This document shows, piece after piece, positions 6,401-63,741 of a stretch of 64,000 nt of DNA (within the stretch, counting starts at the first letter, position 1; every line of letters starts with the position of its first letter). Both the position numbers and the translations under genes were made by a program. The notes below the pieces were generated by a model. The model was not told where the DNA came from. It did no database searches and was given only the letters and a program-made list of their open reading frames with translations. Source of the stretch: Octopus sinensis. Lineage: Eukaryota. The stretch is taken from NCBI RefSeq assembly GCF_006345805.1, contig NC_042997.1, positions 168,516,001 to 168,580,000 on the forward strand, given 5' to 3'.

Positions 6401-9400
6401 GTTTCTCAATGCTTCTAAATTACAAAACAATGTAAATAAATACAGTAATATGTTTCAATAATCACTTTGTGTGAAAGTGACTTTCTATAGCAAGCAGCAG
6501 AACAAATATTTGATAATAGTTAATTATACTTACTGGGCAATCTTCACATGTTGGTCCCTTATAAGTACCTACACATGTGCATACATTGTTTGTACAGATT
6601 CCTTTCCCATTACATAATAGCTGCAGAAAGAATCAAAATATAGCTTCATCAATATTATTACAGTTATACATGGTCATACTTTGTATGGTTACGACAGGGT
6701 GTGTATTTTTAGGCTATACTTTTTAGTTGTTTAGTTTGATTTAGTCATTACAACTAAGACCATGTTGGACCACCACCTTCATATATATATATATATAAAT
6801 TTATATAAATAAGGATAAGAACATTATTTAAAATACCGATCTTGTCAGGTGGCCAGCATGGGAATGAAAACATCAAAGGTAATAATTATTATTAAAATTA
6901 TGATTATATAAATGAACATTTAATGTGGTTTTAGAGTCAAGTTTTGGTTGCTATTTCTAGCATGGTGGTATCTCATAGATACTGGTGAGAATGGATGAGG
7001 ATAGCTGTGTGAAAAAGTGCCACACACTAGCGGTTGAGGGAACCTGTGGAAGAGGTTGACCCAGGAAGACCTGGGATGAAGTGGTGAAGTACAACCTTTG
7101 AACTTTAAGCCTCACCAAGGAAATGACTAGTGACCAAGACTTTTGGAAATATGCTGTGCTTGAGAAGACCTGGCAAGCCAAATGAGACCATAATCTCGTG
7201 GCCTATGCCAGGGGCATAACCTTCTTTGGACACTAAAGGTTATGCCAGGGGCATAACCTTCTTTGGACACTAAATTCTGCTTGCAAAGATCTGTTGAGGC
7301 AAGTGAAATCAAAATCAAATTCGATGACTGGCATCTGTGCTAGCAGGGTGCAAAGAACACCATACAAGTGTGGTCATTGACAGAGCAGCTTAACCGGCTT
7401 CCGTGCCAGTGGCACATAAAAGGCACCATTCAAGTGTGATCATTACCAGCATCGCCTAACTGGCACTTGTGCCCCGTGCTAGTAGGATGTTAAGAGCACC
7501 ATCCAAGCATGATCGTTGCCAGAGCGGCTAACTGGCTTCCATGCTGGTGGCACATAAAAGGCACCATTCGAGCATAATCGTTACCAGCGTCGCCTTACTG
7601 GCACTTGTGCCGGTGGCATGTGTAAAAACATTTGAGCGAGGTCGTTGCCAGTACCGCCTGACTGGCCCCGTGCTGGTGGCACGTAAGAAGCACCCACTAC
7701 ACTCTTGGAGTGGTTGGCATTAGGAAGGGCATCCAGCTGTAGAAACTCTGCCAGATCAAGATTGGAGCCTGGTGCAGCCATCTGGTTCGCCAGTCCTCAG
7801 TCAAATCGTCCAACCTATGCTAGCATGGAAAGTGGACGTTAAACGATGATGATTATATATATATATATATATATATATATATACATACACACACATACAC
7901 ACACATACATACATACGTACGTACATTCATACATACATACATACATACATATATATATAAAATGAATGATAAGGGAACAGGTGTCATATAACAATCTGAA
8001 GTGGGGAAAGACATCCAGAAATATGTAGATTTACATAAGTATATTGTTATAATATGGATCCTCATCCACCTGCATGCTATTGTTGCCACTGTAATATCCT
8101 TGTCACCACTATTATGTTGTGGCGGTTATTCCGTGTCTTATTATCTTTGACTCATATATCGTGCTATCGCTGATAAGCTCTGCAAGACAATGACTTTGAA
8201 ACGTCTACCTTGACAGTAACTTGAACTCGTATATATCACTTAACTGACACTGACTCCTACTGAGAACTCATACAATAACTCTGCTACTACTGACTTTGTT
8301 TCTTTATTGCTTACAAGGGGCCAACGAAGAGGGGACAATACCAGGACATGTGGGGACATAGAACAAACTACTACTACTGACTTTATTTCTTTATTGCTTA
8401 CAAGGGGCCAACAAAGAGGGGACAATACCAGGACATGTGGGGACATAGAACAAACTACTATTACTGACTTTGTTTCTTTATTGCTTACAAGGGGCCAACG
8501 AAGAGGGGACAATACCAGGACATGTGGGGGACATAGAACAAACTACTACTACTGACTTTGTTTCTTTATTGCTTACAAGGGGCCAACGAAGAGGGGACAA
8601 TACCAAGACATGTGGGGGACATAGAACAAACTACTACTACTGACTTTGTTTCTTTATTGCTTACAAGGGGCCAACGAAGAGGGGACAATACCAAGACATG
8701 TGGGGGACATAGAACAAACTACTACTACTGACTTTGTTTCTTTATTGCTTACAAGGAGCCAACGAAGAGGGGACAATACCAGGACATGTGGGGACATAGA
8801 ACAAACTACAACTACTGACTTTGTTCCTTTATTGCTTACAAGGGGCCAACGAAGAGGGGACAATACCAGGACATGTGGGGACATAGAACAAACTACTACT
8901 ACTGACTTTGTTTCTTTATTGCCTGCAAGGGGCCAACGATGAGGGGACAATACCAGGATATGTGGGGACATAGAACAAACATAACAAAGTAAAAAACAAC
9001 AACAAAAGAACATATGTTACAAGATGAATGATAAATGAAAATGGAAAATGGAATGAAGTTCCTCAGCCCCCACCTCAGAGTCGCATCATTTATACCTTTC
9101 AGTCACTTTTCATACTTTGTATCTGCCAGTATATCGAACTTGTACTCCTCCAACAACTGTACATACGTCAGTTGCCATGGTAATTTATATATGTCCAGGT
9201 CTACTTTCCAAATTTTATATCCGCTTTAAACCTTTATGATTCTTTTCTTTTGGTTCTTCATTGAATAAGAGACAGCAATGCCATCCTTGAACGTTATCAT
9301 AATTAATTGTTTCAACCGTTCTGATATCTTTCTAAGTTTTTATCTCTTTGCACAGTTTTCTGTTTGAATTGGCGAACATTAGTGCGTAATTATTCTTTTT

Positions 9401-63741: not shown

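Follow-up and report, generated by a model that had tools for sequence, protein, structure and literature searches.

Exon structure of the locus

The window analysed here, a 64,000-nt stretch of the Octopus sinensis genome (NC_042997.1, positions 168,516,001 to 168,580,000), carries on its minus strand part of a gene for a protein related to the stalk of integrin beta subunits. Twenty-two coding exons spread over ~60 kb make up the 3′ three-fifths of this gene, and copies of a five-exon cassette (E, D, C, A and B) encoding integrin-type EGF (I-EGF) modules succeed one another along it. The exons were found by a six-frame scan for cysteine-rich open stretches, with the flanks of each candidate then read for splice sites. 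The E exons fell below the first filter; each is the sole 38-nt AG...GT[AG] candidate with good splice context in its B-to-D interval. Every exon has an AG acceptor preceded by a pyrimidine tract and a GT donor. The order of transcription is D1-C1-A1-B1 / E2-D2-C2-A2-B2 / E3-D3-C3-A3-B3 / E4-D4-C4-A4-B4, followed by T1, T2 and T3, with the following window coordinates:

63672..63741, minus strand: exon D1, 70 nt, core of the I-EGF2-like module of cassette 1 (cassettes are numbered 0-4)
60963..61044, minus strand: exon C1, 82 nt, closing part of the I-EGF2-like and opening part of the I-EGF3-like module
58971..59080, minus strand: exon A1, 110 nt, remainder of the I-EGF3-like module (8 Cys) and start of the I-EGF4-like module
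54714..54800, minus strand: exon B1, 87 nt, remainder of the I-EGF4-like module (6 Cys)
53890..53927, minus strand: exon E2, 38 nt, linker and first Cys of the I-EGF2-like module of cassette 2; exact RefSeq match
48112..48181, minus strand: exon D2, 70 nt
45692..45773, minus strand: exon C2, 82 nt
44454..44563, minus strand: exon A2, 110 nt
43312..43398, minus strand: exon B2, 87 nt
42015..42052, minus strand: exon E3, 38 nt; exact RefSeq match
38406..38475, minus strand: exon D3, 70 nt
35716..35797, minus strand: exon C3, 82 nt
33710..33819, minus strand: exon A3, 110 nt
27745..27828, minus strand: exon B3, 84 nt
27194..27231, minus strand: exon E4, 38 nt; exact RefSeq match
16486..16552, minus strand: exon D4, 67 nt, with an RGD tripeptide within the module
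14710..14788, minus strand: exon C4, 79 nt
13057..13166, minus strand: exon A4, 110 nt
6534..6620, minus strand: exon B4, 87 nt, last I-EGF4-like module, with CEDCP at the junction to the beta-tail
4540..4660, minus strand: exon T1, 121 nt, first beta-tail exon
3572..3700, minus strand: exon T2, 129 nt, second beta-tail exon, donor AAAG-gtaaca
3430..3443, minus strand: coding part of exon T3, AA TGT GAA GCT TAA, reading ..E C E A stop (14 nt)

The cassette exons measure 38 (E), 70 (D), 82 (C), 110 (A) and 87 nt (B) in rounds 1 and 2, and rounds 3 and 4 depart from this only by three in-frame changes of 3 nt (B3 84, D4 67 and C4 79 nt). Phases are constant in all rounds: E 0 to 2, D 2 to 0, C 0 to 1, A 1 to 0 and B 0 to 0. 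One cassette thus comprises 387 nt (129 codons) with phase 0 at both ends. Each E exon contains one Cys, and the shortest introns are those from B to E (0.5-1.3 kb). A preliminary description of this DNA had claimed the same exon order, lengths and phases, and all of its exons were recovered on the minus strand, its limits 6534 and 63741 being the low end of B4 and the high end of D1.

At the 3′ end, exon T2 completes the beta-tail and the coding sequence (CDS) closes with ...RRK-ECEA-stop. A stop directly after '...GNNFC' in T2 had also been considered as the CDS end; it was dropped, as RefSeq and ENA proteins use the AAAG-gtaaca donor and the 14-nt last exon. We prefer the latter model because it reproduces the window exactly and its donor matches a boundary of the canonical gene. 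A transmembrane (TM) segment is absent under either reading of the T2 end.

The spliced peptide matched the Pfam family EGF_integrin (E = 2e-44) and, in a search of the PDB, integrin beta-2 (E = 3e-31), the best matches there being beta-2, beta-6 and beta-3. Residues 344-528 of a 540-aa peptide, encoded by exons B3-E4-D4-C4-A4-B4-T1, are collinear with beta-2 residues 434-621, which cover I-EGF1, 2, 3, 4 and the start of the beta-tail. On the strength of this collinear alignment, E-D-C corresponds to an I-EGF2-like, C-A to an I-EGF3-like and A-B to an I-EGF4-like module, and the distinct architecture proposed in the preliminary description, an I-EGF2-3-4 triplet repeated and then followed by a beta-tail, is borne out.

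The cysteines follow a strict 6+8+6 pattern that repeats along the protein. Aligned with beta-2, the I-EGF2-like module has lost two Cys together (CEC to CEF with DCVCGQC to DCILGLC), as has the I-EGF4-like module (CQC to CSI with RCRCNVC to ICTNNVC). In I-EGF modules these two residues form the C1-C5 bridge. Compared with canonical integrins, then, the octopus protein has lost the C1-C5 disulfide as a pair in most I-EGF2-like and in all I-EGF4-like modules. The beta-tail shares its Cys columns with canonical integrins, has homologous exon boundaries and is collinear with the beta-2 tail. The RGD of exon D4 lies at residues 784-786 of the full-length protein (CSGRGDC), in the I-EGF2-like module of the last cassette, and the same motif occupies the same place in the canonical octopus integrin beta-PS, so that its role is probably structural, inside the fold, and not that of a motif for ligands.

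A headless, unanchored integrin-beta stalk

The spliced product of the 22 exons (587 aa) is an exact substring, residues 390-976, of the 976-aa O. sinensis protein XP_029637747.1; it differs from its O. vulgaris counterpart at 2 residues and from that of O. bimaculoides at 57. Its best database matches are not head-bearing integrins but headless mollusc models named 'integrin beta-like protein 1' and a 507-aa cuttlefish model. An exhaustive protein search with this cuttlefish relative (P0002) as query returned, far above all others, the 976-aa O. vulgaris protein CAI9716324.1 ('integrin beta pat-3', E = 9e-167), whose 90% cluster contains O. sinensis XP_029637747.1 / XP_036362697.1 ('tenascin-X') and two O. 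bimaculoides fragments.

From the N-terminus, the 976-aa protein consists of a signal peptide, a PSI domain, a hybrid domain without the betaI insert, I-EGF1, five 129-aa cassettes, a beta-tail and the stop. The part encoded upstream of the window comprises the signal peptide, ~200 residues of PSI and hybrid domain, I-EGF1, cassette c0 and exon E1; more copies had been suspected beyond position 64000, and exactly one further cassette lies there. Canonical integrin beta subunits have four I-EGF modules in the lower leg. The full-length octopus protein has 16 (I-EGF1 plus 5 x 3), in keeping with the earlier estimate of at least 12, with a 129-aa period at 40% self-identity, and its mature chain contains 130 Cys.

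The preliminary description had recommended looking upstream for PSI, betaI and hybrid domains. PSI and hybrid domains turned out to be present and betaI to be missing. The Pfam betaI model PF00362 (Integrin_beta VWA) found no match in the octopus protein (P0121), as compared with 351 bits in the control octopus beta-PS, and the cytoplasmic domain PF08725 was likewise absent, as compared with 64 bits in the control. With phmmer, the N-terminus aligned end to end with PDB entries 2p26, 5e6x and 5e6w (residues 28-246 with 9-222, E = 6e-17), which, judged by their lengths and the collinear alignment, are beta-2 PSI/hybrid/I-EGF fragments without the I-like domain. Against full-length beta-2 the alignment splits in two, pairing 28-104 with 9-89 and 115-245 with 333-460 and skipping beta-2 residues 100-332. 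Against octopus beta-PS, residues 117-354 are skipped, where Pfam places betaI at 125-367.

In Kyte-Doolittle profiles, the signal peptide is the sole hydrophobic segment of the octopus, Argonauta and cuttlefish-type proteins; the TM segment of a control integrin scores 3.2 at residue 713. A tblastn search with true octopus and cuttlefish integrins revealed no head, TM or cytoplasmic exon in the window. An AlphaFold2 model built from a 25-sequence alignment had a mean confidence (pLDDT) of 75, with values of 80-95 for PSI and hybrid and 85-91 for the tail; the lowest values fell in the E-exon linkers at the cassette starts (376-381, 506-515, 636-651 and 765-779). Compared with the PDB by Foldseek, the model retrieved only integrin beta chains, and the beta-2 PSI/hybrid/I-EGF1 fragments gave the best fits per target: 5e6v_A (TM-score 0.78, root-mean-square deviation 3.5 A) and 2p26 (TM-score 0.70).

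Because it lacks the MIDAS head, TM segment and cytoplasmic tail, the protein cannot be an adhesion receptor chain. As judged from its sequence, it would be unable to form the main alpha-beta head interface or to bind ligand through a MIDAS, and the combination of an N-terminal leader with no other hydrophobic segment suggests that it is secreted. The proposal that this is an integrin beta leg too long to pair with a normal alpha leg does not survive, there being no betaI, TM or cytoplasmic domain; a chain that belongs to no receptor need not match an alpha leg in length. Nor does the locus provide an example of an integrin receptor whose leg has become radically longer.

That all cassettes belong to one message is indicated by several observations. 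Between the cassettes of the window there is no signal-peptide, tail or terminal exon. In O. bimaculoides the locus is annotated as two proteins of 379 and 604 aa. The 604-aa model (XP_014791256.1) starts at an intronic ATG upstream of D1, which explains the split; the division into two models is an annotation artefact. The equivalent ATG-initiated open reading frame (ORF) is present in the window (63627-63791, minus strand, MCNLYSF...CCS-GTTDIC) and runs from the intron into exon D1. A cuttlefish-type orthologue, known only from read assemblies, has 983 aa and 48% identity over its full length. At least 24 independent contigs (3.7-4.0 kb) encode it, and all of them contain an unbroken ORF of 2.95 kb together with untranslated regions. 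Aligned with an Acanthosepion pharaonis locus at 90-100% identity, they divide into adjoining pieces that fall on at least 24 exons within a 115-kb stretch, where the exon order E-D-C-A-B occurs five times. Intron-less contigs that abut over dispersed exons indicate spliced mRNA, so that in cuttlefish all five cassettes are joined in one transcript. The preliminary description had placed the cassettes in one gene, a view that separate genes or cassettes never spliced together would have contradicted, and the cuttlefish mRNA speaks for the single gene.

The A. pharaonis locus (CAHIKZ030000881.1) is cut at its 5′ end by the end of the contig. Its gene model P0002 omits three B exons that the genome contains and the mRNA uses, and in exon C of the last cassette genome and mRNA appear to differ by a 1-nt indel (genomic NGQLLWW, NGQLCGG in the mRNA); the exons concerned lie at 54050-54138, 79954-80041, 97794-97880 and 107033-117.

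Descent, conservation and constraint of the cassettes

To compare intron positions, O. bimaculoides beta-PS (P0011) was mapped exactly onto its own gene. Positions and phases agree between beta-PS and the window gene through the stalk and tail:

beta-PS intron KCIR-PNST: window E-D junction
beta-PS intron LCGG-: window C-A junction
beta-PS intron STE-LICNG: window A-B junction
beta-PS intron CEECP-TCPG: window B-T1 junction
beta-PS T1-T2 intron: window T1-T2 junction
beta-PS intron KEKK-(S)CPTS-TM: window T2-T3 junction

The two genes differ in two respects: D and C form a single exon in beta-PS, and the equivalent of E is fused there to the I-EGF1 exon. The last coding exon of the window gene begins at the position where the TM exon starts and stops after four codons. 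Because the intron positions and phases match, the gene can be traced to a canonical integrin beta gene. Three changes separate the two: the betaI-coding part was lost, the gene was cut short where the TM exon begins, and a block of five exons was tandemly amplified in frame. Unequal crossing-over within such a block keeps the frame, since it measures 387 nt with phase 0 at both ends. The locus thereby offers a clean example of in-frame exon-block amplification in which the intron positions can be traced to the parent integrin gene.

The cassette copies are 41-68% identical in pairwise protein comparison. Synonymous divergence (dS) among them ranges from 0.72 to saturation, and the ratio of nonsynonymous to synonymous divergence (dN/dS) is ~0.32 in every pair; every cassette copy is under purifying selection. 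The introns share dispersed repeats, with no collinear similarity past ~60-80 nt around some exons, and the reading frame is open across all copies. Given copies that are open, diverged and under purifying selection, with introns that are not collinear, the cassettes are neither an assembly echo nor chance or decayed exons. The preliminary description had already held that they are open and diverged rather than an assembly echo, and protein identity, dS, dN/dS and the introns agree with it.

The five-cassette protein is conserved across coleoid cephalopods. Orthologues with five cassettes were found in O. vulgaris, Argonauta hians and a cuttlefish-type species, and the cuttlefish genome contains the five-exon cassette five times; each of the five carries 20-21 Cys in O. 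sinensis, A. hians (65% identity) and the cuttlefish-type protein. In a tree of cassettes, the three species share an orthologous c0 (98/98 support), and c4 clusters with the legs of canonical integrins (84/91). One-to-one pairs are formed by the c1 (94/95) and c3 (97/94) cassettes of Octopus and Argonauta. Cuttlefish c1-c3 stand apart from octopod c1-c3 (split 97/97) on long branches. With branches of this length, the tree is compatible both with independent amplification of the internal cassettes to the same number and with concerted evolution.

We also considered, as a rather unlikely extension, that these proteins form an undescribed cephalopod class of free extracellular integrin-beta legs in which the count of I-EGF2-3-4 cassettes determines length, octopods and cuttlefish each having amplified or homogenised the three internal cassettes on their own and arrived at exactly five. 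If true, rod length would seem to be under selection, as in a molecular spacer or ruler or in a multivalent soluble integrin regulator, and the proteins would be convergent with vertebrate ITGBL1.

Related stalk proteins, alternative readings and possible function

Canonical integrin beta subunits (O. bimaculoides beta-PS and the human beta-2 and beta-3 ectodomains 4neh and 3fcs) have the PSI, hybrid, I-EGF and beta-tail folds in common with the octopus protein, which differs from them in lacking betaI with its MIDAS, the TM segment and the NPxY cytoplasmic tail, and in having 16 rather than 4 I-EGF modules. Its N-terminus aligns with the beta-2 fragments 2p26, 2p28, 5e6v, 5e6w and 5e6x, on which the AlphaFold2 model superposes with TM-scores of 0.70-0.78. 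Whereas 2p26-type fragments are laboratory constructs, the betaI deletion in octopus is natural and conserved across cephalopods.

The layout of signal peptide, PSI, betaI-less hybrid, I-EGF modules, beta-tail and stop is shared with Haliotis 'integrin beta-1-like isoform X2' (P0005, P0007), and the octopus N-terminus is collinear with P0005 over residues 30-246 (E = 2e-22). The same headless layout is found in a chiton (Liolophura, P0035), in bivalve 'integrin beta-like protein 1' (P0003, P0004) and in teleost 'integrin beta-1-like' (P0008, P0015, P0030). The chiton, bivalve and teleost forms have one I-EGF1-4 set and Haliotis has six modules, compared with sixteen in octopus. Termination just after the last tail Cys is common to the octopus and mollusc headless proteins. 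A tree of the last leg and tail of the mollusc headless forms is a deep polytomy that resolves no single origin. Penaeus (P0006/P0122) and Mercenaria (P0001) models contain two or three complete I-EGF plus beta-tail units in series, joined in the Penaeus models to a Cys-rich C-terminal region; they may represent headless leg genes in tandem that annotation has merged, or proteins with genuinely more than one leg.

Secreted truncated integrins are known from zebrafish, in which the beta-1 paralogues beta1tr-1/2/3 are separate genes whose products lack TM and cytoplasmic domains (PMC1538996). They retain betaA/betaI and four EGF repeats and have lost the beta-tail, and are thus the converse of the octopus protein. 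Vertebrate ITGBL1/TIED is known as a 'stand-alone integrin stalk' that is secreted and inhibits integrin activity (Berg 1999 and Song 2018, as cited in PMC8921176). Like the octopus protein, ITGBL1 is secreted, derived from an integrin-beta stalk and composed of tandem integrin-type EGF modules, with neither TM segment nor ligand-binding head. ITGBL1, however, consists of five doublets with a ~88-aa period; each of its ten modules contains 8 Cys, and PSI, hybrid, I-EGF1 and beta-tail are all missing. In the octopus protein, I-EGF1 and five 129-aa triplets (6+8+6 Cys) add up to 16 modules, and PSI, the betaI-less hybrid and the beta-tail have been kept as well. ITGBL1 is its closest known functional analogue, built differently, and the two are most likely independent derivations. 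The stand-alone integrin stalk would then have arisen more than once: ITGBL1 amplified an I-EGF2-3 doublet and discarded the rest, while cephalopods deleted only the betaI head and the anchor and amplified the triplet five-fold.

Four cephalopod genomes already include a model of the gene, under names that mislead, and the gene appears to be uncharacterised. Open-access literature yielded no description of this protein, of an invertebrate ITGBL1, of a betaI-less integrin or of a cephalopod integrin-beta-like protein. Our analysis brings together as one conserved cephalopod gene what three conflicting automatic names ("tenascin-X", "integrin beta pat-3" and "integrin beta-like protein 1") had kept apart, and corrects them. 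In tenascin-X, a heptad/EGF region precedes the fibronectin type III repeats, and a fibrinogen globe forms the C-terminus. We rejected this identity, as Pfam detected only EGF-type families and I-EGF_1, with neither FN3 nor fibrinogen and with a non-significant EGF_Tenascin hit (E = 0.22); to judge by these domain searches, the name is a similarity artefact.

Taken together, we put the probability that a single gene encodes a 976-aa secreted, free-standing integrin-beta stalk with neither head nor anchor at about 0.85. The strong integrin-beta similarity of the I-EGF modules and beta-tail, and the PSI and hybrid domains upstream, would also suit a membrane integrin beta subunit with an at least three-fold longer leg and unusual alpha-leg pairing; yet the full-length protein and the orthologues of three further cephalopods lack betaI/VWA, TM and cytoplasmic domains, the CDS continues for only 14 nt in what corresponds to the TM exon of the canonical gene, and true octopus integrins detect no head, TM or tail exon in the window by tblastn, which together leave this alternative with almost no probability. 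Hardly more credible is that the cassettes are separate tandem genes, or that the 976-aa protein is a fused gene-model artefact. Such a view could appeal to the O. bimaculoides annotation as two proteins (379 and 604 aa) and to the Mercenaria model P0001, which looks like several leg units in series. The 604-aa model, however, begins inside an intron, phases are compatible at every junction, the B-to-E introns are short, no leader, tail or terminal exon separates the cassettes, and cuttlefish mRNA contigs hold all five cassettes in one ORF.

Decay is a frequent fate of tandemly duplicated exons, and the small length changes of rounds 3 and 4 might be taken to mean that the extra cassettes are decaying pseudo-exons outside the functional protein. 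This too is extremely improbable: the length changes are multiples of 3, all copies are open with intact splice sites, all 20-21 Cys are kept in three species, dN/dS is ~0.32 and the cassettes are present in cuttlefish mRNA. A somewhat less remote alternative, though still one we regard as very unlikely, is that the octopus protein is the mollusc orthologue of vertebrate ITGBL1/TIED. Both are secreted, TM-less and made of tandem integrin-type EGF modules, and the top database matches as well as an O. bimaculoides fragment bear that name. These names, however, are automatic similarity annotation; the repeat unit differs (88-aa 8-Cys doublet vs 129-aa 6+8+6 triplet), as do PSI, hybrid and tail, and ITGBL1 matches the octopus stalk no better than ordinary integrins do (~1e-42 each). 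As a test of such orthology, short Cys-rich modules yield unresolved deep trees.

Some points weigh against the free-standing stalk. Secretion and function are both inferred from sequence. For O. sinensis itself, the support consists of the RefSeq model together with mRNA from a related lineage, and shorter splice isoforms are possible, the cassettes being phase-symmetric. With the octopus protein, the Pfam model Integrin_B_tail (PF07965) stays short of E = 0.01; the beta-tail is assigned from the beta-2 alignment, the Cys columns, exon homology and AlphaFold2 confidence. The shape and hinges proposed below derive from module counts and, again, AlphaFold2 confidence.

Outside the cell, the free-standing stalk would act as a long, disulfide-stiffened, segmented rod. 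Each I-EGF module in integrin structures accounts for ~2.5-3 nm, and the rod would measure ~40-50 nm if extended. The integrin knee lies between I-EGF1 and I-EGF2. Low model confidence in the E-exon linkers, together with their equivalence in position to the knee of integrin beta, suggests up to five flexible points, one at the start of each I-EGF2-like module. Two roles may tentatively be considered, neither of them probable on present grounds: a soluble integrin-stalk mimic that tunes integrin activity, by analogy with vertebrate ITGBL1, or a spacer or scaffold in the matrix or haemolymph. If the protein does modulate integrins as ITGBL1 does, it would provide a natural system for studying what the stalk alone contributes to integrin regulation.

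The introns of the window contain several repeats and stray ORFs. An 87-bp tandem repeat (8 copies, 96% identity) occupies 8284-8980 in the A4-B4 intron. A 411-bp tandem repeat (2.6 copies, 96%) lies at 25923-26974 in the E4-D4 intron and has a ~90% identical copy at 47768-47995 in the D2-C2 intron, so that it looks like a dispersed repeat family. Within the 5.9-kb A3-B3 intron, a 491-bp tandem repeat (2.5 copies, 99%) and a near-identical ~900-bp tandem duplication with a TG-rich microsatellite, both of which look recent, span 32050-33259 and 29381-30822. The A4-B4 intron also contains a 107-aa ORF (10746-11066, minus strand) with CCHC zinc-knuckle-like spacing (CMACGGRH..., CFHCGNTRH...), probably a retroelement gag remnant; a Pfam scan of this ORF and of a second one at 53363-53548 (plus strand) gave no match at E <= 0.01. 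Multiple copies of a short SINE-like element, 80-93% identical and with a recurring translated signature, are scattered through the introns on both strands, among others at:

12096-12182: SINE-like element
13289-13378: SINE-like element
24204-24290: SINE-like element
33930-34108: SINE-like element

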